Of a stretch of 64,000 nt of DNA, positions 27,001 to 54,736 are shown in pieces (position 1 is the stretch's first letter; each line of letters begins with the position of its first letter). The DNA is from Epithemia pelagica (Eukaryota; Protista; Bacillariophyta), in NCBI GenBank assembly GCA_946965045.2, contig OX337229.1, forward strand, positions 3,720,001-3,784,000, given 5' to 3'. A program made the translations under genes and the position numbers. The notes beneath the pieces were generated by a model, which made no database searches, was not told where the DNA came from, and was given only the letters and a program-made list of their open reading frames with translations.

Positions 27001-30000
27001 ACATTATTTTTCCGAAAGCCATATCAAGCATTTCCTGTTTCGACTGTTTTGGAGCATGTGATGGTATAGCTTCCGAAGCTAGGATCCCTCCATCATTTGA
27101 GCTAGGTGCGTTTTCGCGTTGTTTTTCTGCATTTCTCTGAACCCTCTTCTCAAATGTGGTTGCATCACTCTGAGCAGATTCGAGTAATATGGTCATAACA
27201 AGTGACCACGCCATTCGCTTTAGCTGTACAAGAAGTCAGTGCGCCGAAAATAAAAGCGATACTCTAACTCGCAACATCAACTTACCTCTTGTTCTCCTTG
27301 ACCTTGAAGATTCATGAACCTTAATGCCGTTGGCCAAGGGACGTTTCCGTAGCCAAATGAACATAGAAACCGTTCAACCTTTTCAACTTCTTCTTTCGTC
27401 CACGCGGACTTCGAAGAACCTCCCCGTTTCACTCGTTTAAAGTTTTCTCCGTCTTCGTCGACACCATCTTCAGACTGATACCCAAAATCACTGTCCCCTT
27501 TGTCCGAGAGTCCAGGCGACTTCTCAAAATCAAGTTTTGTGTCTTCCGAATAATTTAATTGACCCTTCCGTCTTTGCTTGGGATCCAAGTACGTGTTTTC
27601 GTGTTGTTCATATGTGTCTCCAAGCATCTTCTTCCAAAAATCTGGATCATCAATGTCGACGTCATTCGAGCTGCCCGCTTTGTCGGCTGATTTGGTGATT
27701 TTGAAGCTCGCCTTCGAGAACGTTCCTCCACTACGCTTCCCACCAGCGTCATCATGGACAATTTTGGTTGCCCGGCGTTCCAGAATAGAATCGATGTCTT
27801 GTTGAACGAATTCAGTCGACTCTTTTTCCGATTTACCGTCCTTCTCTTCCGTGAGCATGTCATAAGCACCATGTTTCAACAACTTCTCAACTTCGGATTT
27901 GGACAACGCTCCTTCTCCGGAACCATTTTCAAAACCCTGCAACACTGCTTGATCCAAACCCATTTTCATAGAAGAAAGGTGAAACATTTGCATTTCGTAC
28001 GTCCGAGCGCTTAGCAACCGGTACACCTGTAAAAAGTTGTATACATAAGAAACAAGGACATCTGATCTCAAGGTTATAGAATGGAGACTTACTTGTACGG
28101 CGGATCTTTGACCAATTCGATGACAACGCGCTTGCGCCTAAAAAGAGAAACATGGTATACTTTAAGTTTTCGAACCAAAGGACTTCTTAACCCAATGCGT
28201 ATGAAGTACATCTTACCTGGAGATCGTTCTGGGGATTCCAATCTGAATCGAAAATAATCACTGTGTCTGCTGCCGTCTATTGACAAGATGAAATTAGGAG
28301 ACATACGATCAATCGTCTCCATCAGTGTAATATGAAACTTACCAGGTTAATTCCAACTCCTGTCCAAAAGAAAAGAAATGCCATTAGCACAGGTGTCTAA
28401 GCGAGATTCATAGTTTGTTTGCTCGTACCTCCTGCGCGAGTTGATAACATCATGACGAAAGGCGCGGCGTCATCCTTGGATTGGAACCGGTCAATCGCAA
28501 GCTGCCTTTGGAGCCCCGTAATTGAACCATCAATTCGACTGAAAGTGAACTTCCGTGCTTCAAGATAGCTATTAAGAACAAAAACGTGGTAAGAGTACAA
28601 TAAAACTACATCAATGCAGCGGCTGCTGGAATACGTACTCTTCCAAAATATCCAACATGATCTTGAACTGCGAAAAAATGAGCACACGGTGGCCTTCTTC
28701 TTTAAGCCGAGGCAGAAGCTTGTCGAGTAAAATTAATTTTCCCGACCCGTTCACGAGCATATCAATATCATTCATCGATGCATTCACTTTACGAATTTCT
28801 TCTTCGATCCCATTGAGAAGGAAAACATGGTTACAGCATTTTCTCAGCTGCATCGCCAAGTTACTCAATGTCGGCCCATCCAGTGCCTTCGACTTCCCCT
28901 TATTCAAAAACTTGACATTTTTCTCGTACAAAGCCCTGTAATATTGCTTCTGCGATACTGTTAGTTCAACTTCAATTATTGTCTCTTCCTTGGGAGGTAC
29001 GCTTTTCTCGACATCGTCCTGAGGGGTTACAAGGTGAGATGAAAGCAAGGAGAATTACTCTGATGGCGAAAAGACTTACCTTCAATCTTCGAAGGATGTA
29101 CGGACCAAGCAACTCATGCAGCTTATCAACCGATTCTTTACTTTTCATGTCGCCGTAGTTGTCAAGGAATTGTTCCATACTCCCAAACGAATCCTGGTCT
29201 ATGAAGTGGAGAAGGGTCCAAAGTTCCTTCATATCATTTTGAATTGGAGTGCCTGTACAGAGAATCCGAAATCCAAACTTAAACCTGTCGTCTCTCAATG
29301 TCACCGCCAACTTTGAGCTGTGGTTTTTCAGTCTATGTGCCTCGTCCACTTCATTTGCGTTGCTGTTAGAGCCCCCTTCTGATTCTTAACAATTCAGTTC
29401 AACTACCAATGGACGTACCTACAAGGACTGTCCAGTCGATCTCCGAAAGCTCGAAGGCATCTTCCGTAACAAGCATCTCTGGTGTCGCAACCACAACTTG
29501 TAACATCCAAAGAGAATCGCTCTTTTTTCTTTTGCAACGTCGAAGAAAGTTGGGACCTTCCGTTTTTGGGTGATCCGACTCGTATGCCATTTCAGTCTTA
29601 CGGATAACGGACCTGTCCTCCGAGCTTCCGTGGTACACAACGACGTTGAGATCCGTCCAAGACTCAAACTCTCGTACCCAATGTGGGATTGTAGACAATG
29701 GTGCAATGATCAGGCAGGTTGCAGTGTGTTGTAGCTGTGTCGCGATAATATTCAAAGTAGCTGCAGTCTTTCGAGGACGTGAGAAGGGGGCACAGACATA
29801 CCTGAAGTTGACATTCGCCCGAAGCCTCTTACCTGAAGTGTCTTCCCCAAGCCCATCTCGTCTGTGTGGAGGTCACGTTCAAAGGGTGAGGCGAATAATA
29901 ATTTTGACAAAACGACGTAAAAGACTGCGAGCACATACCTGCGAGAATACACGATCGGCTGTTGATGTAGTTTGCAATCATCCAAGAGACTCCTTCAGCT

Positions 30001-31352
30001 TGATAGTCACGCAACTGGCCTCCATTTTTGTAAATATGCTCCCGCAGAGATTTCTGATACTCCGTTACAGCATGAGAACGTGATTCCTCATTTACAGTCG
30101 TTTTGTCGCCAAACGTCTTGTAAAGTTTTCTCCTCGTCGCGTCCCCTTCGCGAAGGTGGGATCGAACCCACTGCTTGGTTGGTTTGCTGGAGCGACTCAG
30201 AAAGTGTTTCAGGTGACTTTTGTAATCGATGTCATTCATGATCAAGTCCCGTTCCCACTCGTAGCTTGATTCGGTGTAAGGCTGGTTGCACCATTTGACG
30301 AAGAACTGTCTGCCCAATCCTTCTTCATATTTAGGATCACTTTTGTCGGTAACGATCCCCAAATCACTATGCGTGAGTTTATCCTCTTCCTCTGGAGACG
30401 TTTCGGAGAAGTCGTCAGGCTCTGTCACAGCTAAGATTCGGTCAATTTGGGTGTAGGCGGGATCAAAATATTCCCCATCACAGCGCTGGTCGGGAGTAAA
30501 CAAGCATCCATCTATGCTCTTTCGGAAAAACGTATTGAGGTAAGTTTTTGAGTTTTCAATCTGCCCATCTAAATCTCTTTCTGTCTCCCATGAGCAGTGA
30601 AGATAACTGAGACCAGACCATTTCACCAGAAAGCGTTCTTCAAACTTGTCCTCGTCCTCGCAATCCTTTTGATGCCAAACACTACCTGAATCAACCTCTA
30701 CTGTATTCATTTTGGCACATATCGCCTTCCAATCACGGCGCCTCAATGATTTGGACCCAATGATTCTTTGCATTTTCAGAGGATCTTCCTCTTCTACGGA
30801 GGACTCGTCAGTATCACGGAGATCAGGGGAGGCAGAAGACGCAGATAGAGGGACGTGTGATTCTGAATTCGTCTCTTCTTCATCATCTCCATTGTCATTA
30901 TCCTCATTGTGTCTCGTCTTTTCCAGCTCGTCGGCTTCTGTCATCACCTCTTCGCGTGACTTTTGAGTCCTTTTCCCACCCAACGCTGTTCGAGTTTGTT
31001 TGATCTCGAGTTTCGGTGACCGCGGAAGATCAGTTAATCTAGGCTCTGCCATGCTGGCATTAAATTTGTTTGCTCGAGATGAGGTTCGTCGAATCACCGA
31101 GGGTTTTGATTCAATATTTTTCGATTTGAGCCGGCGGTTGACTTTCAATCGCTTGAAATCGGCCTCGTCTTCACCCAAGTCATCGGAACTGTATGTGTTT
31201 GATTCTTCTTCTACTTCAGCACCAGTGTCCAGTTCACCATCTTGACCAGCATACATACCACCATGTGCTTTGCAGCGTCGGCGAGGATAGCGAGATTTCG
31301 GCATATTCTCCTTGATTAAGAAAACATTCAAGGGAAAGTCAAGTGATTTCAT
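24021..31352 (-). CDS. CHD-family chromatin remodeller (double chromodomain + SNF2 ATPase/helicase), many exons
   Basis: Chromo 1: FLVKWSGLSYLHCSWE. Chromo 2: FFVKWCNQPYTESSYE. Helicase motifs: [99 protein letters not shown] (assembled across short exons). Confidence 0.92.
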
Positions 31353-36984: not shown

Positions 36985-38273
36985 GCAGGGTTCCACGTTC
37001 TCACGCAGCTACTATGTAGAGTTACTCTAAACTAGCTTTAAAATATACTAGAAAGTCTAGTAGAGGAAAGTCCCTGTCTACTCTAGCGGGACTTGGTCGT
37101 AGTTTCACTTGTGAAATTTTGCGGGACTAGGACTTGGGGGATGTTCGGGGAATGGCGCGCGACCAATGAACCTAGGTAGTTCACACGCAATCCGCAAGCC
37201 TTTCGACTTTCGACTGGAGTGCTCGGTGACGTCAACTTCGGAAGCATGAAATTCACGCGGCCGTTTTTGTATCTACTTCTTCCCATATTTCTTAAAAATC
37301 GAATAACCGAAAATAGAAACTTGATGCCGAGACTGGTATCAATGATCTTATATCTTGAGTACGTTTCCCACCAATCTAAGATTTTGGTCTGGGTACATCC
37401 TGCACGTTACATTGTCTCAAAAGGTCTCGTAGCCGGTCTAGATGGATTAAGGAGGAAATTTGGGCACAGTTACGTTACTGATGGATGAAACGAACTGTGC
37501 GGTGACCAAAATATGGCGACGTGAGTGAGCGAAATCAGTGGTAGCAAGGCCTCTAAGTTGGAGGCATGCAATAGTCACAATTTTATCCATTTCTACGCTG
37601 TTTGTATTTTGCACATGTTTCATGGACTTTCGGCCTTCTTCGCAATCTTCGCATACATCGGGGGACAGCCAAAAGTTGCGAGCCTGCTTCGTACTCCTAG
37701 GAGTAATTGGTAAACCTTCTCCACGACGCTATGATTGCTATATTGACGATGGAATCTAGACTAGACCTAAAATCCTCCTCTTTATTTCGTGCCAGGCCAA
37801 AATCTCAGCCAGGCCAAGCACGATTTTCGTCTGTCTGCCACACGAAACTTTGGCTCAGGCCAATGGCCGGGCGTAAGTAACATGCTTTTATTCAGGATAA
37901 AAGGTCGTTATTTCCACCAGGCCAACGGTCTGCAAGTCGTCCAATGCACCGCGACTAAACGCACGTCGTCTTCACGTACATAGGCGAAATAGCAATACTT
38001 GCGCGCTGCCGTTATCGCCAACCTACGCTTTGTCTTGTCATTGCCGACGCGCATTGGTAGTGTATTCTTGAGCATTTTTGTTTCATTGGTGTGCCAAACG
38101 ACAACAAATGAACAACAAACGATCCATTGAACGAAAACCATCCTATGTAGGTCCCTTTTATCGTAGGACATGTAGGAGCAGTACCGAAAACTAGTGCTAA
38201 ACGAAATAACAATGCCGATGTTGTTGTTATCATAAATTTGAGCAAGGACAAGTTGTTATCATCCACATCCACA

Positions 38274-41200
38274 ATGCCATCGCCTCCATCACGTCGTTGT
38301 CGTGGTACTCCCTGCAACGAGGACCTCGACTCTGTCTCACCCCAGAGCACCCCTGACCGAACATCCACCCCCAGTCCGAGACGAACTCCCAGTCCGAGAC
38401 AATCCGCGACCCGAGGAGAAGCCACCGCTGACGAGGCACCCGTGACTCGTGACCAAAATACTGGTGGTGGTCATGTTCTGGAGGTAAATGCGTTTATGGA
38501 CCATGACGAGTTAGACCGAATGATGGACGTGTTCACAAGTTCTGTGTGTCGTACCCTCGATAATGCAAACACTCGGAAGGCTTACGCGAGCAAGATCAAA
38601 GAGTATTTGAAATATTGCGAAAGTCCTCACCGAAACCACCTGGCACTAGCGGAACGATATCTCGTGGACGAGCCTGGGTCGGCCTATTTTATGTTTTATA
38701 TTGTTTTTCGTGAAAAATCCTTTGGTAAACGAAAAAAAAAACGGTGTCTTTGACTACGAAGATTTTCAGCGAGTCTTACTGACTTATGGAGCTTTGTACA
38801 ATCGGATCAAGCATGATCCTAAATGCGAACTGCCCCCCGACCAGGTCGACCCTGTGAACCCTCTATCGGAAGCTACTGTCTTGTTGTATAAGAGTGCGCT
38901 TCGGCGCCAATGGGAAGAGCAGAAGACGAAGCGATCCGGCGAGACATCATGGGATCAACATTTAGACACTCCACGTGTCAAGAGGCTTATCAAAATAGCA
39001 AAGGTCAGTACCACATGTCACACATCCTCCCTAAGTACATGACGTCTCTCACTAATTACTTTTATTTTCCAGTGCCGCAAGACACGTGTCCGTTAGAGGA
39101 GTTATAAAGAAAAAGTGAACGAGACGTCCCCCTTCGAGCACTTTGAGATGATTAATAAAATTGAATTTTCGTTTTGGTCCCGTGGCTGCAGCGAATCAGA
39201 TTCATCCAATTCGAAGAAATCTCTGTTCGCATCTCTCCGCCATCGATTCTCGTTCCTGATGAATTATGCCTCGATCCTACGAAGCGAGAGTCTTCATCTG
39301 GCAGAACTGTCCGACTTGCGTGTCTTTGCCATCAAGCGACCAGCTGATATAGACAAAATGGCAGTGGTACTTATGGAATGTCAAACTGGTAAGACGATCA
39401 AAGCCGGATCTCCCTCGCAGTTTGCCCGTGCCACGCGCCACAAAAATGTCATGTGCTGTCCCATTGGTGCGTTGGCGATGTATCTATTCTTGCGTTTCCA
39501 TGTCACCGAAGAATTTAATGGACGTGCCGACCACCCCGACCTTCGACAGAATTCTTCTTGGTTCGACTTCAAGATATTGGTGTCAGGAGAAGGTTCCCCT
39601 ACCACTTCCGTGAAAGTTTCGAACTTTCGCTCAGAGATCGACTCCATTTTTGGCGAGTTAGGAATCGTGTCGGACTACTCAACTCACTGGTGCCAGGGTG
39701 ACCGGAGTCTAATTATACCCCCACTTTTAGACCCGGTCTAAAAGGGTATAATTATTTTAGACAGAGGTTGAGTCTAAAATAAAAGTTTTAGACTCTTAGC
39801 CTTAACCCTTCAGTAGCGCCGCCACCACTGCGTGAGTAGGAGACCGTTCTGCCTCATTCATCTCAATGCCATCGCAATGAACAAAGTAAGGTCTCAGTTA
39901 TCCTCTCTCATGCTTAGAGAGTGCAAGAACAATGTTATCCATACCATCCAATAACTTAGATGATGAAGCTTTGAGGTCCTCTGGATGTGTTGTCATAGAC
40001 AATGCTCGCTCCTAGAAGCTGGCTGTCTAGGGTTAGGGTTATTGCTTCGCCGTACAAAACCACGGAGAGATTTTAGACCCTGTTTTAGACATTTTTTACA
40101 GTCTAAAAGTACTTTTAGATTTATTTTAGACCCGAAATATTTTAGACTGTCTAAGCGGTCACCCTGCTGGTGCCGGCACATTGCCCCCACACATTGTGAG
40201 TTCAAAGAAGTAAGCCCCGAGCTTATCAAGCAACTTGGTACGTCCCTACTGATATTCCCATATTCATATATAACCCTTACCGATTACTAACCATTCCCTG
40301 CCATTACTACAGGCAACTGGGATCGCGACACCCAAGAGACCCGGTACTCGTCCAAAATCCCTATTGCCGCCATCCGATGTATGGCAGGATTCGAGCAGTC
40401 CGATGGGTATTGGTTGCCTCGAGGTAGACTGGAAGTCCCCAAAGAGTTATCGGATCAAACATGGCCATGGCTAGACGAGAAAGAAGAATGGGTACTTAGT
40501 GATTTAACGTATTCTGAGCGAGCTCAAAACGTCAACGCACGGAAGAAGCACCCTACTGCTGTATGCTTCTTACACTTTCTACGGTTCCTAAGAGATGTTC
40601 TCATCCAAGACATGGCTGCCATCTTCAGTCAGTTGGAGAACTGCGACGACACGGACGAGGGCGAATGCGAACTTCGGAAGAGCCACGTACTGTTCACTGA
40701 CTTCGACATATTCAAGTCCGCCGAGTTCTTGAAGTTTAAAGACGACATGCACGTGCATTTAACTAAGAACAGCCCGAGAACAACGAAGAAGATCAGAAAG
40801 CCAAGTCAATCGAAAGGGCACTCCCAGGCGTTATTCAACGGTTCGAGCATCTGAATGTGGAGAACAGTATCTTGAAGCAGACCATGGAGAAACTCTTCTT
40901 TGAAATGGACCACACTAGGGAGTCCATCACACAGAACACGCAATCCATTGTCCAGTATCTCCGAGACATGCTGGAAGCCCGGATCAACTTGGAATCGGAT
41001 CGAAAATTCCGTCGCTACCAGGAACACATCACCCAGTCTTTCCGAACGATTATTGGGGGAACTGTGAATGCCTTGTCAACGGCTCACGAATTCGCGGCAG
41101 ATGCTACATTCGGAACGGAAGCAAACCCCAACGACGACGACCATCCAATGCCATATTCCCACAACGACACTGCCTTGCCCAATCACGTCTCCCCAACCCA

Positions 41201-41819
41201 ACTGCCATCTCCTGGAGAACAGAATCCAACGGATCCATTCGCAGCTGCTTTCCCAATGTCTCCTCCACCGAACCGTTCTCCCACACTTGATTCTACCAAT
41301 CCGAACCCAACTCCACCAATTACAAATCGCCAAGAATTGATGCCACAGAATACGACAACGCCCTCTCCACCAATCGCGAATCCCCGAGTCACTCCCGCGC
41401 AGTTACCAGACGACGCAGATGCCTTCATCGGAATGAAACTACCGTGCACACTAGTGGACAAAGGCCGACTAACGATGAGGCGCGTATACGAAGAATTCTT
41501 CGGACTTGGAGAACGACAGGATATACCCACTCCTCAAGGATTCCACGGATTGGACGAGCGTTTCAAATCCAGATGGCGATCGAAACATTCTTCCAAGGAT
41601 CAAACTTTCTACAATAGAGTCCAGAGTATCTGCCGAGGTATCTGCGTGTATCACCAAGTTCCCCCAGGACACTGGAGCCCTGTCATTGAAGAATTCTGCT
41701 TGGAATGGGACGCCATTCTCCACAAGAAAGGCATACATGGGGTATTCCGCGAGTTCCAAAAACATGGAATTACCACAAAACGTGGTACGAGATCACCTAG
41801 CAATAAGACAAATACGTAG
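38274..41819 (+). pseudogene. Crypton-type tyrosine recombinase (Ndc10-II/YR domain + C-terminal GCR1_C-like domain), inactivated
   Basis: Reconstructed catalytic set: R (ILRSESL), K (GKT), HxxR (HWCR, after removing the insertion at 39694-40173), GNW and Y (TRYSSKIP). Also RHKNVMCCPIGALAMYLFLRF, MAGF..YWLPR, and GCR1_C-like TMRRVYEEFFGLG...LDERFKSRWR...FYNR at ~41433-41650. Introns 39004-39072 and 40238-40312 (TACTAAC branch site). Lesions: A10 frameshift at 38732-38741, TAG at 39094-39096, the TIR insertion, and a frameshift near 40770. Confidence 0.88.
39694..40166. mobile_element. 473-bp non-autonomous TIR transposon (MITE, hAT-like ends) inserted in the YR gene
   Basis: 11-bp TIRs CAGGGTGACCG/CGGTCACCCTG. 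Target duplication CTGGTGC at 39687-39693 and 40167-40173. About ten subterminal TTTTAGAC/GTCTAAAA motifs. Removing it restores the YR reading frame. Confidence 0.92.
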
Positions 41820-41855
41820 TTCATTACGTACTTTTACACTAATATGAATAGTTCC

Positions 41856-42944
41856 TTAGCTCTCACGTGTACGTTTTCTACCGCCCGTGAATGTCTTACG
41901 TTCGCGATCACTGTCATCCGTTCCAACACTATCTGCCTCCAAATCAATATCATTGGCTCCCTGTTCTGCCCGTGCGACATCCGCTTGTTCGCCCCCTGCA
42001 TCATCGGCTTGTTCTCCGGCTTGTTCGTCATCTGCTTCTCCGCGATCCACATATACCAGTTGTACGTCATTCTCCATCTCATCCAATCGCATCTGTCGGC
42101 GCATCGAATCTCGGTCCCACTCTGGACCGGGCCCATGTAAGTCAACCTGACCGTCACCGTCACGCGGAACATCACCCAGCATAGGCGGCGACCACGCTCC
42201 ACTCGGAATGTCCATAGAAGCACAGAATGTAGGAATTCTCCGACGCCCACCAGGCAATAATGATCTGTATTCAATCCCAAGCGTAGACGACACGTTGACA
42301 CCGATTTGAAGTACTTTATGAGGGTGAGTAGTATTAGCGACGCTCTCCAAATGCGTGACGGACTCCAACAACCAGTCGTTTCCACTGAGCTCAAAGTTAT
42401 ACGTCTGAGGCGGTGAGGTAAAAACACGAAGGATAGGTTGTCCTGAGCAGTATTGGAACCACGTGCTCATTACCTGCATCTTGTAGTAGTCCTGGCGCTG
42501 TGTCTCATTCAAGTTAAAAGGTGAGTATTTAAAGAAATCAAGTCTCACCAAATGTACCCCATCGTTCGGTGCGACACGGAACTCCACCCGTTCATGCCAG
42601 AACCTCTTTAAGGGCGCTTCGGGTTGTACTGCATCACAACGATCTTCCCAGTCACCAGACACCTCTTGTCCCAAATACGTCAGCGTTTCAAAAATAATCT
42701 TCTTCGAACTTCGATAATTGCCAGGAAACATCCCATGGAACATGTAATACTTATTGATTCGTTTCGTTTGTTCGTGATCATGCTTCTCCCAAAATACACG
42801 CTATTCCATACCCCGAACATCCGGAAATAACGTAGGCAACGGGGCAGTAGCAATATCTTCCAACGAACTATCCGTGTAGACCATACGACCCATCTCGCCA
42901 GGGTTGTTTTGGATCGTAAAATTCTCGTCGATTTGTGCTTCCAT
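41856..42944 (-). pseudogene. Orphan intronless ORF (~362 aa, beta-rich core, acidic tail) with one in-frame TAG at 42801-42803
   Basis: ATG at 42944 reads MEAQIDENF...DVRGME*RVFWEKHDH...YYMFHGMFPG, in frame with ORF 41856..42743. Confidence 0.65.
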
Positions 42945-43100
42945 ATTCGTATTTTATGACAACATCGAGGTATATTCTTTCAAATACCAACACAATCGTG
43001 TAGACATATCGTGTCTACTCCTAAAATATGAGTAGACATAATTGTCGAATACAATGAATCCTATAGAGTATTCATGTTAAGCTCAATATGTTTGGTGCGA

Positions 43101-43257
43101 TTACGGGTTCCCTTCAAGACTCGCCACTCGTGCCTCGAGATCACTCACGCGTACTTTTAAGGCCTGGAATTCGGCGATCATCTGTTTGACATCAACATTA
43201 TCCTTCTTGACGTCATCCTTGACTCCTTGGCGTTGAGACTGTGACAAACCGTCGTCA
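43101..43257 (-). pseudogene. 3' part of a 144-aa KOW/SH3-like + coiled-coil gene split by the copia insertion
   Basis: Reads (S)DDGLSQSQ...IAEFQALKVRVSDLEARVASLEGNP*. In frame with 52328..52605 once the element and one GAAGT copy are removed. Confidence 0.8.
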
Positions 43258-43262
43258 GAAGT

Positions 43263-44045
43263 TGTTACAATTCTCTTGGAATTGCAGAGGCATTAATGCT
43301 CGGTAGAGCAGACAATCAGGTAGGTCACCAACCGATACAAGCTTCTCAGGGTCAGAGAAGCAAGCAAGTCGAAGTCTATCAGAAGGATAGTCGGGACACA
43401 AAAGAAGATGTGATAAATGGTGATATTGTTAGATTGTGTGTTGATTACTACGATAGGTCTACGTGAAATGTTCGGTCCTGCCAAGGGTCATGTGTCATAG
43501 GTTCTTGGCGGCAACAGGTTTGGAATAGTTGGAGTCGATTCATGTGATGTATATGACATGTATATGTGGACGGATAACATATACAGGGTCAACAGCTCTT
43601 GCTTTGGGTTGGCATAGTTGTTTTCATGGCGCGCAGCTTGTTGACAATTTGGAGATTGTGGGAATGGAAATATGGTCTCGCGTGATCGTGTGTCGTGCTT
43701 GGGATACTTAGACCGTTGGGTCGGATAGATGCCGACAGCGCTCGGATGTCGCTTGGGCGCGCTCGATGATTTCGGGCGCGTACGCTTAGAGCGTTAGTAT
43801 AATGTCCGAGCAACGGCCAAATTTACGTCCGTTGTAATACCGCACGACCCAGTTTAGTCTTGAGAGTGAGTTCGTCAATCTATTCTCACTTTTCATGATT
43901 TGCGAAGAAATATAGGTCGATATAGCGCGAAGCTAGGGAACATAGCTCGAAGCTAGATGGCATGATGCGATAGCACGAGGCTATGTGACATGGGGAATCG
44001 ATGAGATGTAGAATCTAACCACCATAGACGGTGAGAATTCTAACA
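43263..44045 (-). repeat. 3' LTR (783 bp)
   Basis: Near-identical to 51545-52327. Four substitutions found by eye (43295, 43388, 43561, 43626). Confidence 0.97.
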
Positions 44046-44057
44046 CTCCCCACAACT
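44046..44057 (-). promoter_or_regulatory. Polypurine tract (AGTTGTGGGGAG) abutting the 3' LTR
   Basis: G-rich run directly 5' of the LTR TG on the minus strand. Confidence 0.8.
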
Positions 44058-44333
44058 CGTCGTTTCAGCCTTGTCATCATTGGATTTGTTGAGGTCTTGA
44101 ACTTCTCCTTTCCAAAACAACAATGGCTTGAGCATGGGCCAAATAGATACGAAATCCCAATGTTTGCTAAGGATATCGGCAGGGTTGGTCTTTCCATCTT
44201 TCCAGTAGAATGCAACATATTTTGCTGCGATGGCTTCACGAACTCGGTGGTATGACTGAAGATGGTGTCTCTTGGATAGTATGGAATGAGGAACGGTTGC
44301 ATTGAGCACAACAGATCTGTTATCTCCGTACAT

Positions 44334-46132
44334 GTAACTTCGCTCTCGGATAGGTACTCCAAGGTAGCGGAGAGAATGTCGTAATTCTGTAATCTGATCT
44401 ATTGCTGTCCTTGCAGCCACAAACTCGGATCCATAGGTAGCAGTTTCCACCGTGCTCTGCCTCTTGCTGTACCAGTCAATAGGTGTTCCGTTCAACAAAT
44501 GTAGAACAGCAGTGACGGATTTACCAGTGACTATGTCATGCATGAGATTGGCATCAACATAATGAGTTGTGGTAACATAGCGGCCAAGAGGTGTTGGGCA
44601 GTCTTCAGGAATACGTTCACTTGCATTCGAATAGACAGTGCGAGTCCAATCAAATTCTTGGGTAGGAAGACTTGAATAATCAGGCTCTCCAATCCTAAAT
44701 CTGATTGCGCCTTCTGGGAGATTTGCAAGGTATCCATAGATACGCGTGGCTCTATCAAGATGTCCTTTCCTCGGAGCAGCACGAAAGCGTGACAGCGTCA
44801 TTGTAGCTGTGAAGACGTCGAAACGACCAATAGTGATCACCCATTGGAGTAACTTCGCTCTCGGATAGGTACTCCAAGGTAGCGGAGAGAATGTCGTAAT
44901 TCTGTAATCTGATCTATTGCTGTCCTTGCAGCCACAAACTCGGATCCATAGGTAGCAGTTTCCACCGTGCTCTGCCTCTTGCTGTACCAGTCAATAGGTG
45001 TTCCGTTCAACAAATGTAGAACAGCAGTGACGGATTTACCAGTGACTATGTCATGCATGAGATTGGCATCAACATAATGAGTTGTGGTAACATAGCAACC
45101 AAGAGGTGTTGGGCAGTCTTCAGGAATACGTTCACTTGCATTCGAATAGACAGTGCGAGTCCAATCAAATTCTTGGGTAGGGAGACTTGAATAATCAGGC
45201 TCTCCAATCCTAAATCTGATTGCGCCTTGAGGTGTTGGGCAGTCTTCAGGAATACGTTCACTTGCATTCGAATAGACAGTGCGAGTCCAATCAAATTCTT
45301 GGGTAGGAAGACTTGAATAATCAGGCTCTCCAATCCTAAATCTGATTGCGCCTTCTGGGAGATTTGCAAGGTATCCATAGATACGCGTGGCTCTATCAAG
45401 ATGTCCTTTCCTCGGAGCAGCACGAAAGCGTGACAGCGTCATTGTAGCTATGAAGACGTCGAAACGACCAATAGTGATCACCCATTGGAGTAACTTCGCT
45501 CTCGGATAGGTACTCCAAGGTAGCGGAGAGAATGTCGTAATTCTGTAATCTGATCTATTGCTGTCCTTGCAGCCACAAACTCGGATCCATAGGTAGCAGT
45601 TTCCACCGTGCTCTGCCTCTTGCTGTACCAGTCAATAGGTGTTCCGTTCAACAAATGTAGAACAGCAGTGACGGATTTACCAGTGACTATGTCATGCATG
45701 AGATTGGCATCAACATAATGAGTTGTGGTAACATAGCAACCAAGAGGTGTTGGGCAGTCTTCAGGAATACGTTCACTTGCATTCGAATAGACAGTGCGAG
45801 TCCAATCAAATTCTTGGGTAGGGAGACTTGAATAATCAGGCTCTCCAATCCTAAATCTGATTGCGCCTTGAGGTGTTGGGCAGTCTTCAGGAATACGTTC
45901 ACTTGCATTCGAATAGACAGTGCGAGTCCAATCAAATTCTTGGGTAGGGAGACTTGAATAATCAGGCTCTCCAATCCTAAATCTGATTGCGCCTTCTGGG
46001 AGATGTGTAAGGTATCCATAGATACGCTTGGCTCTATCAAGATGTCCTTTCCTCGGAGCAGCACGAAAGCGTGATAGCGTCATTGTAGCGGTGAAGACGT
46101 CGAAACGACCAATAGTGATCACCCATTGGAGT
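44334..46132 (-). repeat. Triplicated RT-end/RNase H segment (641+641+515 bp), with a nested 126-bp duplication in two copies
   Basis: The junction CGAAGTTAC|TCCAATGGG occurs at ~45490 and ~44849. The 42-aa unit (E/Q)GAIRFRIGE...EDCPTP is doubled in the two upstream copies. Confidence 0.93.
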
Positions 46133-49100
46133 TGTCCAATCAGAGTTTGGAAATGGCTAGTACCTTCTTCATCAAGGAGCTCAGAATCATCCAATTCAGG
46201 ATGGTCTCCACCAATAAGAGGTGTTTTGGCTTTCTTGGGTTTCTCCTTGAAGATTCGTTCGAAAGTGTCCATCATCTTACCAATGTAGCGTCTTGGATCT
46301 GCTACTAATGTTCCATCAGAATCCTTGGTGTAACAACATCCCAAGTGGAAATCAATAGGTCCATCTCCTTTGAGGTTGAAGTTGTATTTCTCCTTCAGGA
46401 TCTTGCAGATATTCCCAGGATCAGTAGAAATAATGGCTAAGTCATCAACGTATACGGCAATGTATTCGTAACAGTCTTCTCCAGGTGCTTTCCTCATCCA
46501 GATATCCGGATCTGCTTTGCTTGGTGAAAATCCCATGTCTGTCAAAACATCAAATAAGACATCATGCCAGCGTGCGCCTGATGACTTCAATCCATAAAGT
46601 GCCTTGTATATAATCAGGATGTGACCTTCTAATTCCTTGAATTCAGGTCCTGCGACAATGAAAATTTTCTCCCCTGTCAAGGCTTCCAGATATGCGTTTC
46701 CAATATCTGCTCCCCATATTTCCAAGTCATTCAAAGTACCCAGGAATAAGGCAATACGGAGGTTGCGAATGGAAACAACACCTGAATAGATTGTCTCAAC
46801 AGGTTCTTTTGTGAGATGTCCATCTGCGACAAGTCTTGCTTTATGTCGTCCATCATGTTTTACGTCAAAGACAAGATGTACACGTATCTTATGATATCCT
46901 TCAGGTGCATTGGATACTTTCCCTTTAATGAAGATGGCTTTCCCAAAATCCTTGAATGTCTTGTAGGACTGGATCTGTGATAATTCTAATTCTGTTGCAT
47001 CCTGCCACTTTGTGTTGCCATGTTGTTTATCAAGAGTGACAGCTTCCTCATAATTGCGTGGTACTTGGAATCCAAACTTATACTTGACGGAATGGTGAAC
47101 TTGTTTAATCCTTGACTGTTTGGCTGCTTGAATGAGACGTTTGCTTGTTTTGACATAACGTTTCAAATGCTTCCATCCAGGTTCGTTGAGTAAACCGTGT
47201 TTCTTTCCATAAATTGCTACAGTGATCGGATCATCATTGGCGATGAGTGATAAAGGTTCATAGGTAGTCTCCCCAGTTTCCCAATCAACAAGCAAATTAT
47301 ATTTGCTCCCCTTGTAATCTGGATCAGTTGTGTTCAGTGGGCCTTGATGGGCAATGACGTCCCTGAACCTGAAAAGATTATCTCCAGAGGTTTGAGCTTG
47401 GTTATCTCGTTCGATATACTCCATGAGTTGATTATAGGATATCATCTCATCAACATCAGAATTTGTCTTTCGGTAGATGTACTTGACACGTTCTTCCTGT
47501 TTCGTTGCTTCTTCATTAAGATCAATGACTCGTTTGATGACACGTGCACGGTGTCGCTCCCCATTTTCTTCTGTGTCGCATAGGAATGTGCGTCCTATCA
47601 TGTCGTCAAAATCGATCGTGGGCATTGGTTTGGATGGATCTTCACTATCACTGCGAATGAAGACAGTGTCAGCTTGCTTATCATTGTCATCCTTCTCAGA
47701 CGAATCCTCCCCTGAAGGTCAATCCACACGTAGGTTAGGTGTAGTGGATTCAACACGGCAAACGGCAGAACGGTAGATTATCTGGTTATCCTGGGTGAGA
47801 ATCTTCCAAGTAAAAGAATCACCAACGTTGTGAGCAAAACCAACCCAGTGGCCAAGTTTCTCATCAGAAGAAGATGGATATGAACCGGAATTGGGTTCAG
47901 CGGGGTCGACACGGTAGTAAACCTCATCCCAGAAAGGAAAGAACAAGAGATGAGTAATGTCGGGTGGGCGTCCGGAGAGAGCCTCAAGAGGAGTGCGACC
48001 GGAATGGGTGGGTGATGATGTATGGTTCAATAAGTCACAGACATACTCAAGGCAAAGAAGCCAGGTGTTGGCAGGGCAACCAGTGGCATTCATGAGAGCG
48101 TTGGTCATACGTTTGACGGTCTGGTAACGGTTTTCAGCCTTATTCTGGTGTTGACAATAAGGTTCGGATCGATACTCCCCAATAAGCAAAGTGCGAAGAA
48201 TGTCTTTGACCTTTTGAGAGATGAGAGATGAACCACCATCACTGATAAGAGTCTCCATGGCACCACGAAACCGGATGTTGTCCTGAAGAGTATTGACAAA
48301 CTGTTTGGTTGACTTGATCCCATAGATATCAGTAACCAGAGTATCTCGACCAACAAAGATTTGTGCGACTTTACCGCCATGGTCAACAGCAGGGGTGTCG
48401 GAGAAAACCGAGTCAGTAGCAACGGGTTCATGACGTCGAGGTATATTAAGGACCGGATTGCGAGCCTTGAAATGTTTCTTGAGGGTGTCGTGGTCAAAAG
48501 TAATGCTACCATTACGTGTAGTGTGCTTGAACGTATCGGTAAGAACATCTTCAGATTGCCAACCAAAGAATGGACGGAACTTCTTCCAGTCATACGCTTC
48601 CTGGTAACGACGGTGGACAGAGGCATGAAGTGTAGGATCATTACCTTCTGCGTCAGCATAGATAGAAAAGAAGGGTGCGTCGTCAGGTCCATGATCGTAT
48701 GGGAGATCCAAAAGGAGATTGAGGTTACAAACAACACGATCAGTGTACTCCCCATAGTTGTCATATGGATGGTTTGACATACTACCATCAGTCTTGACGT
48801 GTTTCCAATCAGGATCATTGTCAGAGGGTGTGGGAGAATACAAATGGTCCAGAACACCAGGATCCCATGTGTCGGGTGACGTGAAGATGATCTGAGGTAA
48901 GGTATTCATGTCATCGTCGCTGGGGATACCCAAGGAGTGGATGTAGGCTAACCCATCCTTGATGTGAAGGGGTATAGCACGACCATCAAGTGTAGTGATG
49001 CGTTGTTTACCATCAACTTTAACAGATCGTTCATCAACAGCAAGTCCGAAATGCTCGAATTGACCAGGAGCATGGATAGATAAGCCCTTTCCATAATAAG

Positions 49101-50728
49101 CATATTCATTGAAGATGCCGACAATAGGTCCATCATTGGTCTCAAACTTTGCGGCACATGTGACGACAGGAAGTCCAGTAAGTTCATGGTTATCAATACC
49201 CACAATAGTGATATGGCGGCCAGTCTTAGAAAGGATGCGCATGTCAGAACCAGCAAGTCCTCCATTAGCACCACGGTCAATCAATTGATTTCCTGGTAAA
49301 GTAGATTTCCTGGAAAACAAATAGCGTGGAACATGTCCTGCTTGTTTATGCATGTTGGCTTTGAAAGTAACCTTCTTGCTTGTCTTGGACTTGGCGTTAG
49401 AAAGAACACTAGTCAGGTCAGTTGCCAGGTGATTGATATCAGTCGTCATGGCTTGGTTGATAAATTGTGTAACCGGATCTGAATCATCTGGATGCTCAGG
49501 GACTACGCCAGGTGAGTCGTCATCAGATGCAACTTGGTTGGGGTCAGGATCAGGTTCCGGATCAATGTCGAGGGCATGTGTTTGCACTTTCCTCGGTGTT
49601 GTGGATGAAGGTGCTTGAATCATCTTGTTATACTCAATGATCAACTTGCGATCTTCTTCAGAAAGTTTGAACCATAGGTCACGCGGTAGACTAACCTTGG
49701 ACGAAGAGGATGGAGATTCAGATGTCGCTTTGGTGTTGTGGACATGATACTCCATATAATCTTGTGAGGTTATGTCAGCATCTGTATCTTGGCCATATAG
49801 TGATTCATGTTGTTTGACATGTCGACGGCGACTATGAACAGATGACTGGGTTGCTTGATCATGGTCATAAGCTGCGTCTAGAAGGAGACGGAAGTATGAT
49901 TGATAGCAAAGGGATTTTGCACCGGATTTGGTGTTCACCACATTATCCAAGATCTTGACTCCGCGGAGATCAGGTACCTTTTCTACAGCTTGCATGAGGA
50001 AGGTCATCCTGGTATGATCAGGGATGCGATCAGACAATGTCACTAGATTGTCTAGCAAACGTAGCTGCTCTTGAAAGTGTAGAAGAAATTGACGTGTTGT
50101 TCCGCGCCATGTGTCGTCAAGACGTAGATTGGAAATGTAGTTGGTTAAACGGAGGACTTCTCGTTTTGCTAGGTCGGATTCGGTATGCAAAGAGTGTAAC
50201 TTCTGCAATACGGCACGCGCATCTTCATCATGTTCATGTTCACGTACATAGGCTCGACCTTGGTCAGTCTGAATGATACGGACAAGAACGGAGTAAAGAA
50301 ATACTTGTTGCTCTTGAAAAAGTTCTTGGGCATACTCATCATCATGGGGTGGTGTGTATTTGAAATTCAGAACGTTGGATAGGCCTTGAGCCTTAGCTGT
50401 AGTCTTGAATACACGCCAGAATCAATCGTAGTATCGTTCATCCTTGAATACCTCATATGCAGTTGCGTCGTAATGTGATGTGAACCCGGATGTACCACGT
50501 GTGCCACGTATGTACCACGTATGTGATATCCGGATGTGTGTTGTGATGTGCGAATCCTGGAAATTTCCGTTGATTCCGACAAATTTTCGCCGAGTTTCAA
50601 CAAATTTTCGCCGAATTTTCGCGATTTGACGGGAATGTGTGGCGTGTTGTGCGACCAAGGGTACCCGGATGTGCGTTGAGTTTAAGTCTTGGAAAGGTTT
50701 TGAGAGGACGGGAGTTAACTATGAGTAA

Positions 50729-51508
50729 TTAAGCTTCGGTCTCCGAATCCCCACTCTCTTCCGAATAATCAGAGTCGTTTCCAGGCTCAGATGGGACAGC
50801 ACAAGCAAGAGAAGAAGGGGTATCACCTTCAGCCAAGTGGTTCTCGACCTCGGTACGCAAAGGGAAGATAGTTGCACGATGGTCCTCGATGGTATGGACC
50901 TCGTGGATGTAGGCGACGTAGTTATCTAGGCGTACAACGTTAGGAGGCAGAGGGCAAGTCGTCGCGTTCACGACGTAGATGGTATTGTAGTATCCAGTTG
51001 GGCGCTCGAAGGTTAGGAAGCGGAGGTGGACAGTACGGATGGGGTTGCCCGAGAGGGCGGCCAAGATGAGGCGACGCCTCGGAGAACAATGAAGTTGGTC
51101 GTTCAGACGGTCAATGTCTTCTTGGTCGACGATGTGGGTCACCGATTGGAACTGGCGTTTGATCTGGGTCTCCCCACGGATGATCTCGGGATCGAAGGTC
51201 GAACAAGTTGGTTGGCGGAAATACTTGATATGATCAGCAATCAACCGGGTGGTACGACGGGATCGAGAAGGGACGAGCCGACGAGGCGGACTCGGGGGCC
51301 GAAGCAACGGCGCAGGGATCGGAGCGTGAGGCTGGGTTGGAGTCTCGAATGGGTTGCTGTTGGAACTGTCGACGGAGATGTTGACCGATGTGTTGGCTGC
51401 CTTCGGCGTCGGCACCAGTTCCTGCTGCACCAGGGTATCGGGCTGCCCGGGATGCAGGTTGGCTCGATAGATCTGTCGTACAGGAGTGATAAGCTTGTTA
51501 GTATCCAT
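50729..51508 (-). CDS. Intact 259-aa ORF of unknown function between the PBS and gag of the copia element
   Basis: ATG 36 nt inside the 5' LTR boundary, same strand as gag-pol, uninterrupted. Pro/Arg-rich N-terminal half, beta-rich C-terminal half, acidic tail. Confidence 0.7.
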   Translation of the reverse strand: MDTNKLITPVRQIYRANLHPGQPDTLVQQELVPTPKAANTSVNISVDSSNSNPFETPTQPHAPIPAPLLRPPSPPRRLVPSRSRRTTRLIADHIKYFRQPTCSTFDPEIIRGETQIKRQFQSVTHIVDQEDIDRLNDQLHCSPRRRLILAALSGNPIRTVHLRFLTFERPTGYYNTIYVVNATTCPLPPNVVRLDNYVAYIHEVHTIEDHRATIFPLRTEVENHLAEGDTPSSLACAVPSEPGNDSDYSEESGDSETEA

Positions 51509-51530
51509 GAAACCACAAGGAAATAAGCTT

Positions 51531-51544
51531 TGAGACTGTTAATC
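51531..51544 (-). promoter_or_regulatory. Primer-binding site candidate GATTAACAGTCTCA, complementary to a tRNA-Asn(GUU) anticodon arm
   Basis: Directly abuts the 5' LTR. The plus strand reads TGAGA-CTGTTAA-TC, i.e. a 5' stem, the canonical Asn anticodon loop and two pairing 3' stem bases. No TGG/CCA-type PBS is present. Confidence 0.65.
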
Positions 51545-52327
51545 TGTTACAATTCTCTTGGAATTGCAGAGGCATTGATGCTCGGTAGAGCAGACAATCA
51601 GGTAGGTCACCAACCGATACAAGCTTCTCAGGGTCAGAGAAGCAAGCAAGTCGAAGTCTATCAGAAGGAAAGTCGGGACACAAAAGAAGATGTGATAAAT
51701 GGTGATATTGTTAGATTGTGTGTTGATTACTACGATAGGTCTACGTGAAATGTTCGGTCCTGCCAAGGGTCATGTGTCATAGGTTCTTGGCGGCAACAGG
51801 TTTGGAATAGTTGGAGTCGATTCATGTGATGTATATGACATGAATATGTGGACGGATAACATATACAGGGTCAACAGCTCTTGCTTTGGGTTGGCATAGT
51901 TGTTTTCGTGGCGCGCAGCTTGTTGACAATTTGGAGATTGTGGGAATGGAAATATGGTCTCGCGTGATCGTGTGTCGTGCTTGGGATACTTAGACCGTTG
52001 GGTCGGATAGATGCCGACAGCGCTCGGATGTCGCTTGGGCGCGCTCGATGATTTCGGGCGCGTACGCTTAGAGCGTTAGTATAATGTCCGAGCAACGGCC
52101 AAATTTACGTCCGTTGTAATACCGCACGACCCAGTTTAGTCTTGAGAGTGAGTTCGTCAATCTATTCTCACTTTTCATGATTTGCGAAGAAATATAGGTC
52201 GATATAGCGCGAAGCTAGGGAACATAGCTCGAAGCTAGATGGCATGATGCGATAGCACGAGGCTATGTGACATGGGGAATCGATGAGATGTAGAATCTAA
52301 CCACCATAGACGGTGAGAATTCTAACA
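51545..52327 (-). repeat. 5' LTR (783 bp)
   Basis: Near-identical to 43263-44045 at offset 8282. Confidence 0.97.
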
Positions 52328-52605
52328 GAAGTATGCCATGGCTCCTTCCCCTTGATCTTACAAACGCCACGGCATTGACTCCAAAATTCATAGATCTTGT
52401 CAGAAGCCAAATAGGAAGGGGCATATGCGCCAGCGTAGGCTTCCACATTCTTCGGCAAGAACGAACCGTACTTGTTCTCTGTAAACGTCACCGTCACACG
52501 ACTCCGAGACTTGCCAGGTTCTTCTTCCTTGGTGACATAGCCACACACTCCCCGACGCTGTCCAGTTAGAGGGACAACTAGATCTCCTAGCTTGAATTTC
52601 ACCAT
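52328..52605 (-). pseudogene. 5' part of the split KOW/SH3-like + coiled-coil gene
   Basis: MVKFKLGDLVVPLTGQRRGVCGYVTKEEEPGKSRSRVTVTF fits a KOW-like pattern. The ORF runs up to the TSD (WHT-S). Confidence 0.75.
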
Positions 52606-52869
52606 TTTTGACTGACTGGTTTATGATAGGTTCCATCCATTGGCTCTTCTGCTTGCGAGCCATTTTAGGGGGAGCGGCTAACGCGCGGTCTAAAATTTAG
52701 AGCCGTCAGGCTCACATTCACATAGACATTTCTATAAACCTTAACTAACGAATAACAGTTGGATGTAGTATACTTAGATAGTAAAGGACGCAGGCCTCTC
52801 CGTAGGCGTGTATCCATCAAAGAGGACCGTAACGACCAAGAGTGAAAAACACGGAAAGACCTCATCACC

Positions 52870-53460
52870 ATGGCGGACCACCGCGAATCAACAATGGCAA
52901 TGCTTGCCCGGATCAAGGCAACCATTGCAAAGGATGACGAAGAAGGACTGCCCACCGACTATCTTTGCGGCTATTTCATTGCATTGAAGGAAGAGTTGGA
53001 AGAAGAGATAGAGGAAGAACGCAACAACCAACAAAAAACCGACGACGACCGTGGCAAAAGCAACGACCAAACCAACAAAACAACGAACAACGGCATCAAC
53101 AGCGCAACTAACAAGGAAGACGAAGAGTCTGTTTCCACATTCCAGAAGATTCTGGACATGGATTTGTCGGACGACAAAGAAAAGGACGACGACAAGGACC
53201 AGGAGGACGACGACAAGGACGACGACCACGACGATCTATTCAAGAAGCTCTGCAAAGAAAGAGACGAAAGCGAGTACAACGATGTAATCACCCAGCTCAA
53301 AGAGTACGAGACTGGCATGATCGTCCTACACTACGGCCGCAAACGTCGTCGCAAGATCCATCCCAACGACCGCCATGTGCCGAAACCACTGAAGCAAACC
53401 ACCATGAAGTCTTTTTTCGGTGATAGCGAAAACAACAAAGGCATTCGGAAGGACGGATAA
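52870..53460 (+). CDS. Acidic 196-aa orphan protein with basic NLS-like YGRKRRRK and a C-terminal PIP box (QTTMKSFF)
   Basis: ATG in CACCATGG context, intronless ORF, D/E-rich centre, Q-x-x-M-x-x-F-F at 53395-53418. Confidence 0.7.
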   Translation: MADHRESTMAMLARIKATIAKDDEEGLPTDYLCGYFIALKEELEEEIEEERNNQQKTDDDRGKSNDQTNKTTNNGINSATNKEDEESVSTFQKILDMDLSDDKEKDDDKDQEDDDKDDDHDDLFKKLCKERDESEYNDVITQLKEYETGMIVLHYGRKRRRKIHPNDRHVPKPLKQTTMKSFFGDSENNKGIRKDG

Positions 53461-54736
53461 GATCTACTAAAATATTGATAGTTATCTCTAAACTTATATA
53501 TATTTTAGTCTTGTGTGGGTTTACTCTGTGGATTGTTGTATCAGAGTGGTAGTGTTGTGTAGAGGAAAATTTTGTCGACGGAATTAGTCCAGACATTCAC
53601 GGACAAATGTGTTCGGGAGGCAAGACCAAGAATAAAACAAGATACAAACAAGACATCTGAACAAGACATCGGAGTCCGACACTATGTGTGACGACGATTT
53701 TGTCTTACTACGACAAAATTGAGTCACTATCAAGACTCATGTTAACGGTTCCAGGTTTGAATCGGATTGTACTGGTCTGGAGGAGGCGGGCGCGGAGGAG
53801 GAGAGCAAGCCTATGAGTTTCGAGCCGAGCCATTACTTCAGTGGGCCAATCTGCAAGATTGGCCCCGTAGTGCGACTACGGTTAACCTGAGCTAAACTCC
53901 AAAATGCCGAGGAAAATAATGCCTCTTTTCTCCCCTTCTTCTTCCTCTCCTTCCCCTTCCCTTTTCGGGGGTGGGGGCTCCTCACAGAAATACACCCTAC
54001 ATGCCACCCCCGCTGGGGCGTGCGAAATGGGGTGGCGGTGGGCAATAATGGGATAATGGGAATGCGTGTTGCTCACTTCCTGGCGAGGCATTTTCACGCA
54101 TGCCTCTAACTTACAAAGGATTAAGAAATAATTAGCTATTAGGCGAGATTATCGCCGGCCACAGCATACACTTCTGTCAGGCGCGCGGCATATGCTAACA
54201 ATTTCTTAGAATTGAAGGCATGCGCTGAGTGAAAAATGAGATCTTCATAAATAAAAATGTCATTTTTCAAAGAATAGTATGTTAGAATAACCGAAACCAG
54301 TAACGCTGCGCATGACGCACTCTTCCAGAGGGTCCTCCCTCCTCCCGTCACCCATTCGCGTTGTTCGCATGCACAAGCCGCATCCCGTCGCACTCACCGT
54401 AACCCGTAGGCCAAAGCCAGTACCACTTTTGTACAACTGTTGGGGCCAGTCAGTGGTTAATACAGAAACTTCCGAGTGTTGTGGTCCACGAAGCGGCGAC
54501 GTCGAGCTGGCGCTCTCAAAACCCAAGATCTCTCGCTTTTTCACGAAGTATCGTGTTTTCCCTTGTAGCAGAATCTCTGGCAAGAACACACAGCTCACGC
54601 ATACGGGCAAGCCCCTCAAGCACATCACATGAGGATGGGGATGGAGAGCTTCTGGCAATTCTCTCAGAGCCCAAATTACCCTTTTCATTCATCGTTCCAT
54701 CTTAGAGGCTCCAGCAGCGCATTTTCAGCTGTAGAC

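Follow-up and report, generated by a model that had tools for sequence, protein, structure and literature searches.

A very probable dead copy of a multi-gene Crypton-type DNA transposon in the diatom Epithemia pelagica

Among the classes of eukaryotic DNA transposons, Cryptons are, to our knowledge, the least understood, and they are treated as one-enzyme elements. In the literature they code for one protein, or for a C48 peptidase as a second (PMC3212892), and the Cbf2/Ndc10 domain has been traced to the recombinases of CryptonF (Kojima and Jurka, 2011; PMC3212892). Their integration has been proposed to proceed by recombination over a short word between the joined element ends and the target (Goodwin et al., 2003); for the active element CryptonF-1_cRei of Chlamydomonas, a CACCG end and a CAYCG target have been observed (PMC9977147). 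Here, we analyzed a stretch of 64,000 nucleotides of Epithemia pelagica (contig OX337229.1, positions 3,720,001 to 3,784,000, hereafter the window), in which a sequence-only reading had proposed a cargo-carrying Crypton, with a tyrosine recombinase (YR) gene followed by three small open reading frames (ORF2, ORF3, and ORF4). Our results indicate that window positions 37779-53932 very probably hold a Crypton-type DNA transposon with several genes, in a copy that is dead. The Crypton literature searched gave no account of this set of genes.

The DNA searches covered the window's own assembly (60.5 Mb, 23 contigs), and several relatives of the element were found there. The ends of the window element are sharp, at 37779 on the left and at about 53928-53932 on the right. 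The boundaries tentatively placed at 37820-53705 were wrong, since the homology with the other copies ends at 37779 and about 53932, and the block measures 6,604 bp, not about 6.3 kb, after removal of a nested miniature inverted-repeat transposable element (MITE) of 473 bp and a nested copia retrotransposon of 9,065 bp. The similar words ACGATTTTCGTCT (37820) and ACGATTTTGTCT (53694) that had been taken to flank the block do exist, the right one in a small hairpin, but both are internal and are not ends; the 8-mer common to them occurs four times in the window, which is the chance level. The hairpin is perfect (53690-53722, ATTTTGTC / GACAAAAT, 7-nt loop) and lies inside the 3' non-coding part of the element.

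A second copy of the window subfamily (subfamily A), at C4:1092153-1097916, is collinear with window 37779-53931 at 83-91% identity and contains neither the MITE nor the copia. The more distant subfamily B resembles the window element only in its coding regions and in its terminal stretches of about 170 bp (left) and about 190 bp (right). Two of its copies, C9:3453046-3461635 and C2:6149405-6174011, measure 8.6 kb and are 99.6-99.8% identical in different flanks, although the C2 copy is interrupted by about 16 kb of nested insertions, the same copia family among them. A third subfamily B copy, on C10, has an identity of 97.9% over the first 4.5 kb. In addition, a more diverged element was found at C10:1893473-1902442 by a pattern search with the terminal words, which were present only at element ends. 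At least seven loci have exact shared ends and unrelated flanks. The elements on C1, C8, C16, and C5 were read in part or by coordinates. Copies with the same gene order and common ends at unrelated loci, which the sequence-only reading had named as support, were thus found. The window subfamily is a third, four-gene subfamily that is extinct and has left two decayed copies. At the left junction of the C4 copy (C4:1092054-1092251), a 99-bp unit consisting of 44 bp of flank and the element's first 55 bp is present twice in tandem.

The recombinase is the gene that places the element among the Cryptons. When the YR exons were put to Pfam separately, NDC10_II was matched by exon 2 with 58-62 bits and by exon 3 with 36-37 bits in subfamilies A and B (cut-off 26.3), with best E values of 9e-16 to 5e-17. 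The C9 and window genes have the same catalytic set, namely an ILRSESL box, HWCRH, a tryptophan at +23 after the arginine, and a tyrosine at +9 after the tryptophan, a spacing that we take to be the same as in Cre. Removal of two GT-AG introns (read by eye) from the C9 gene gives one open frame of 974 amino acids with all motifs intact. A C-terminal GCR1_C signal was sub-threshold in the window (16.3 bits) and at the same position in a relative, P0018 (14.6 bits; cut-off 23), and Pfam gave no GCR1_C match in the C9 protein. In the element's own ORFs of both subfamilies, Pfam matched neither the DUF3435 captain domain nor a reverse transcriptase or other transposase domain, the sole RVT_2 match being in the nested copia. 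A PDB sequence search with the YR core gave no match, and the outside relatives of exon 3 were few, on short ENA contigs with the same Pfam domain. By its domain and catalytic residues, the predicted recombinase is of the Crypton/Ndc10-related type.

The ends of the element are also well defined. All copies start with (T/A)CTTTATTTCGTGCC and end with AATAATGCCTCTTTT, the homology begins at (T/A)CTTTATTTCGTGCCAGGCC, and in all copies the left junction has (T/A)CTTT and the right end CTTT. Neither a terminal inverted repeat (TIR) nor a long terminal repeat (LTR) of the element was found, with no terminal match longer than 11 bp. The terminal repeats of 3-5 bp are shorter than the 4-6 bp usually quoted for Cryptons. 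The terminal 170-190 bp are the sole non-coding parts conserved between the subfamilies, and they are rich in GGCCAA/TTGGCC: all six sites of the window element and 7 of the 10 in the C9 copy lie at most 200 bp from an end (P about 5e-8 each). These clusters are putative protein-binding arm sites. An inverted-repeat core site at the joined ends was rejected, as the candidate, a weak 6/7 arm pair around TGCCTCT, is incompatible with the junctions.

The C9 copy lies inside a dispersed repeat, with many paralogues of both flanks, and at four places on C9 and C6 the match to the left flank ends 7 bp before the match to the right flank. A pattern search returned five paralogous empty sites, four on C9/C6 and one on C13, all reading ...AAAAGAT-ACTTTTC-TTGGGG..., while the occupied C9 site reads ...AAAAGAT-ACTTT[ATTTCG...GCCTCTT]TTTTC-TTGGGG.... 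The comparison indicates that the C9 copy sits in a T run, with only TTT common to both junctions. This TTT overlap fits the Crypton model of short-word recombination between joined ends and target. The search for empty sites was successful in part, with five paralogous ones for the sister C9 copy and none for the window copy. Taken together, the shared ends and order at unrelated loci, the diverged subfamilies, and the sister empty sites uphold the earlier proposal that the four genes form one mobile YR unit of the Crypton kind. The repeat around the C9 copy is large, dispersed or tandem, and has more than 40 paralogues of 70-96% identity near contig ends (C9:3.32-3.58 Mb, C6:0.07-0.39 Mb, C13:3.07-3.30 Mb, and C17:2.96-3.17 Mb); it may be a subtelomeric array.

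The small genes travel with the recombinase across diverged lineages. A tblastn search found homologues of ORF2, ORF3, and ORF4 (31-37% amino acid identity) after the YR in subfamily B, which contains two ORF2-like genes, one ORF3, and two ORF4 genes, whereas subfamily A has one of each; ORF3 is on opposite strands in the two. In the partly read C1 and C8 elements, there are two ORF2-like genes, one ORF4-like gene, and a small ORF rich in cysteine. Both ORF3-like and ORF4-like genes were found in the C1, C8, and C16 elements, the former between the YR and ORF2. Across subfamilies with recombinase cores of only 55-80% identity, the YR is followed by ORF2-, ORF3-, and ORF4-like genes. Between copies, the proportion of nonsynonymous differences (pN) in the small genes was 0.13-0.44 against a proportion of synonymous differences (pS) of 0.32-0.87. 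In the diverged copies pS was 0.69-0.87, near saturation, with pN at 0.26-0.44, and the closer pair had a ratio of nonsynonymous to synonymous rates (dN/dS) of 0.34. Judged by these differences, the ORF2-4 families are protein genes under purifying selection. Because they recur with diverged YR lineages and are under purifying selection, ORF2-4 are very probably the element's own gene set and not passengers; the minimal shared set, as shown by the window copy, is the YR with one member each of ORF2, ORF3, and ORF4. An extra conserved ORF of about 125 amino acids with the motif WCGxCRxxxCxxCDRIF (pN 0.36, pS 0.87) is present in C1/C8 and absent from the window subfamily.

These arrangements bear on whether the locus is a composite, that is, a one-gene Crypton beside or fused with a separate unrecognized element that owns ORF2-4. 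A 2.15-kb repeat on C7 and C10 (96.6% identity) that holds ORF2 alone, stops sharply on the right at a boundary of its own, and lacks Crypton ends would fit such an origin. However, no internal boundary was found in the element: in both subfamilies, the conserved cis ends lie outside the YR and outside ORF4. As first described, only 36 bp separate the stop codon of the YR (41819) from that of ORF2 (41856), and none of the YR copies read terminates just behind its stop codon, at the equivalent of 41819, without the small genes. We consider a composite origin very improbable.

The sequence-only reading had likened the locus to fungal Starships, with a YR captain moving variable, host-derived passengers that serve the host. 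The variable gene number (ORF2 and ORF4 each once in A and twice in B), the opposite strands of ORF3, and the existence of solo ORF2 units would agree with cargo. Against this, the same three families accompany all of the diverged YR lineages that were examined, genes of a host or metabolic type are missing, the elements measure only 6.6-8.6 kb, the recombinase is of the NDC10_II/Crypton type without a DUF3435 match, and the ORF2 and ORF4 searches showed no relatives outside this species. The genome contains at least 11 full silicon-transporter genes (up to 755 bits), which identifies the host as a diatom. The idea of a fungal host or a Starship was dropped in view of these genes and of the missing DUF3435 match. 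The cargo analogy thus did not hold, as the small genes are a fixed, selected set with no DUF3435 captain in a diatom host, and we regard a cargo carrier as very unlikely.

With a profile of eight ORF2-family members, ORF2-like genes were found downstream of 9 of the genome's 10 YR loci, at a distance of 3-4 kb, also in lineages with a YR core of only 55-61% identity to that of the window. In the tree, window ORF2 and the second ORF2 paralogue of C1/C8-type elements group together, with moderate support. The first-position paralogues of the sister subfamilies begin with hydrophobic-acidic stretches (VIxLD/VIVID) that resemble SUMO-interaction motifs, and a start of this type is absent from window ORF2. 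The 156-bp gap that had been given between ORF2 and ORF3 requires ORF2 to begin near 42944, a start that is reached only through an in-frame stop. ORF2 had no Pfam match and no usable match in the ESM Atlas. A profile search of 1.84 billion representatives gave 13 matches, all of which were judged by eye to be this species' copies, and a word-based search returned this species' proteins only. The AlphaFold2 (AF2) model, a helix on a five-stranded sheet, had a confidence (pLDDT) of 51, with about 70 in the core. Structure searches (Foldseek PDB, Foldseek viral, and VIA-wide) gave weak NTF2/cystatin-like rows alone (E at least 0.016, Z at most 4.2), and no fold was assigned. The sole gene of the 2.15-kb repeat (C7, about 2604.9-2607.1 kb; C10, about 2153.4-2155.5 kb) is an ORF2-family gene of 310 amino acids that is open on C7, and a 276-bp tandem repeat lies on one side of the repeat.

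Without the copia, ORF3 runs from 52605..52333 to 43262..43101 and codes for 144 amino acids. Its two halves were searched separately, and the ORF3 searches covered Pfam, this genome, and known folds. The AF2 model of the C9 homologue, ORF3B, has a beta barrel at residues 18-66 (pLDDT 75-84) followed by long helices, and its best Foldseek rows were the KOW domains of eS4 and Spt5, the Tudor domain of SETDB1, and PWWP (E 1e-3 to 5e-3). No Pfam KOW match was obtained at E up to 1. The earlier label of KOW/coiled-coil is therefore reasonable as a fold class but not as a family assignment. Among the small ORFs, the structure searches gave a KOW/Tudor-like barrel for ORF3B and weak rows alone for ORF2. 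As described before, ORF3 (-) and ORF4 (+) are divergent with a gap of 264 bp, and ORF2-4 are intronless and have no Pfam match.

ORF4 is acidic and has a PIP-type motif, in agreement with the sequence-only reading. The pattern Qxx[M/I]xxF[F/L] closes the C-terminus of every ORF4 homologue read (six diverged homologues), and its Q and F are invariant in an alignment of five homologues (28-37% identity) with a mean identity of 37%. From its residues and position, this is a canonical PCNA-interaction (PIP) motif, suggesting that ORF4 may bind PCNA. In the ORF4 searches, the only proteins found were judged by eye to be those of this species, from the window, the sister copies, and near-identical sequences on other ENA contigs.

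The window copy itself has decayed. The codons of its HxxR motif (HWCR) are split by the MITE, the YR gene has frameshifts near 38734 and near 40791-40857 as well as an in-frame TAG in exon 2, ORF2 has a premature in-frame stop, and ORF3 is split by the copia; ORF4 is the sole gene of this copy that is still open. Judging from these reading frames, the window copy is a dead, pseudogenized relic that would be immobile on its own because its YR is split, frameshifted, and stopped, its ORF2 stopped, and its ORF3 split. The features of the locus are given in Table 1.

Table 1. Features of the Crypton-type element and its nested insertions in the window.
Feature	Position	Strand	Basis and remarks
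Whole Crypton-type element, subfamily A	37779..53932	+	Homology to C4, C9, C2b, and C10 copies begins/stops exactly here; flanks unrelated
Conserved 5' terminal region, starts TCTTTATTTCGTGCC, four GGCCAA motifs	37779..37948	+	79-80% identical to subfamily B; neighboring non-coding DNA unalignable
YR exon 1, N-terminal part	38274..39003	+	Aligns to exon 1 of intact C9 gene; frame change between 38738 and 38734
YR exon 2, catalytic core (RSE box, HWCRH), MITE-interrupted, TAG near start	39073..40237	+	NDC10_II E 9e-16; 80% amino acid identity to C9
Nested MITE, about 473 bp, TIR CAGGGTGACCG...	39695..40166		7-8 bp duplication CTGGTGC(C); absent from C4 copy
YR exon 3, NW...RY catalytic tyrosine region, linker, C-terminal domain	40313..41819	+	NDC10_II E 3e-9; frameshift near 40791-40857
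ORF2, conserved FHG...DG.HLVRLD...PVLRI core	41856..42944	-	Open part 41856-42743; eight-member family alignment; upstream stop read
ORF3 C-terminal half, coiled coil	43101..43262	-	Cut from its start by copia; C4 copy continuous here
Nested copia LTR retrotransposon	43263..52327	-	TG...CA ends, 783-bp LTRs, RVT_2 match
ORF3 N-terminal half, small SH3-like (KOW/Tudor-type) beta barrel	52333..52605	-	Homologue of C9 ORF3B
ORF4, acidic, basic stretch, C-terminal PIP-type motif QTTMKSFF	52870..53460	+	Five-homologue alignment; motif also in C10 copy
Conserved 3' terminal region, GGGCCAATC...GATTGGCCC palindrome, ends ...AATAATGCCTCTTTT	53745..53932	+	73% identical to subfamily B; terminal word at 4 element ends

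Both nested insertions had been recognized before. The copia is indeed an LTR element, but its right end is at 52327 and not at 52332, the last 5 bp being the target duplication GAAGT (43258-43262 and 52328-52332); its LTRs are identical at 779 of 783 positions (99.5%). The MITE, previously placed at 39694-40173, has terminal inverted repeats and a target duplication and lies at about 39695-40166. At least 30 further copies of 91-98% identity are present on many contigs, which suggests a young, hAT-like non-autonomous family. The copia contains internal tandem repeats at 44334-46164, in the 3' part of its coding strand, with units of 126, 515, and 641 bp in three copies at 89-100% identity. 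A copia of the same family (97-98% identical) is inserted in YR exon 3 of the C2 subfamily B copy (C2:6155268-6164199), giving two copia insertions in about 12 Crypton copies or fragments, which may reflect chance or a target preference. The neighbors of the element are ordinary genes coding for a tetratricopeptide repeat (TPR) protein, a GT34 glycosyltransferase, and a TYW2-type methyltransferase. At window 29829-31352 (-), a 507-amino-acid ORF contains a chromodomain (Pfam Chromo, E 8e-14) and has no other match.

Several observations weigh against a mobile multi-gene Crypton. For the window and C4 copies, whose flanks are unique, the search of their own assembly returned neither an empty site nor a second allele. 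At the sole testable junction, that of the C9 copy, the overlap is 3 bp, the empty sites are paralogous and not allelic, and slippage in the T run is possible. The profile search found no ORF2-like gene near the YR locus C16:1169296, solo ORF2-like genes occur in the C7/C10 repeat and as fragments on C13 and C2, and ORF2 has a low-confidence model with no significant structural match. Another reading, an immobile segmental duplication of a gene cluster that happens to include a domesticated recombinase, would suit the age of the window and C4 copies (9-17% diverged) and their lack of an empty site, but it is hardly credible in view of the seven or more loci with exact shared ends in unrelated flanks, the 99.7% identical pair on different contigs, the five paralogous empty sites, and the pseudogene decay, rather than conservation, of the window and C4 copies.

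As a multi-gene Crypton, the element might move as follows. In line with the proposal made for Cryptons, the recombinase is predicted to excise it as a circle whose joined ends would recombine with a short, T-rich target. An element protein might bind the GGCCAA repeats packed into the two ends. With its PIP motif, ORF4 is predicted to dock on PCNA, the replication clamp, and ORF3 and ORF2 might be nuclear helper or tethering factors that couple recombination to replicating or marked chromatin. More broadly, and only tentatively, we suggest a diatom Crypton lineage with its own multi-protein recombination machine, in which the YR together with ORF4 as a PCNA adaptor, ORF3 as a KOW/Tudor-like protein with a coiled coil, and ORF2 as a protein of orphan fold would bind arm-type GGCCAA sites and tie excision or integration to the replication fork; this is possible, though doubtful. 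If true, it would account for the gain of copies by a recombinase element that cuts and pastes, and it would be a eukaryotic parallel to phage integrases with their accessory factors. The three selected extra families, one of them with a predicted clamp-docking motif, are candidates for choosing the time and place of YR recombination and for raising the copy number of elements thought to be cut-and-paste. The intact sister copies in the same genome make this a testable system.

Among the known systems, CryptonF is similar to the window family in being a DNA element with an Ndc10/Cbf2-related YR and without a reverse transcriptase, TIRs, or long repeats (PMC3212892, PMC9977147; Goodwin et al., 2003). 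Short identical end words that resemble the target and introns in the YR gene are also shared, and the C-terminal domain of the window YR gives a GCR1_C-like signal that is weak and below the Pfam cut-off. However, CryptonF has one protein, with a C48 peptidase added in some oomycete elements, whereas the window family has three to five further conserved genes. Further differences are the diatom host, a terminal word of (T)CTTT in a T run where CryptonF has 6 bp, and the conservation of about 170-190 bp packed with GGCCAA at each end. CryptonS, known from oomycetes and diatoms (Kojima and Jurka, 2011), agrees in host group and in the presence of a second gene in some elements. In contrast, that second gene codes for an Ulp1-type C48 peptidase, which is absent here, and most CryptonS elements end in TATGG, while the termini of the window family are TCTTTATTT... 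and ...GCCTCTTTT, a comparison made by description. The lineage may belong to either CryptonF or CryptonS.

Starship and Enterprise elements of Pezizomycotina are similar in that several genes are moved as one unit by a YR located at one end, but they are fungal only, have a DUF3435 captain, measure 15-700 kb, and carry variable, host-beneficial cargo (PMC10104507, PMC8092012). The window family differs from them in its 6.6-8.6 kb size, its fixed gene set, and its Crypton-type YR. The pogo transposase and LINE-1 ORF2p are transposon proteins with PCNA-docking motifs. The PIP box of LINE-1 is mentioned in PMC7617806. Similarly, the window family is a mobile element with a canonical motif of the Qxx[ILM]xxFF kind, which presumably gives it access to replicating DNA. 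However, the motif lies here on a separate small acidic protein and not on the enzyme, and the element uses a YR.

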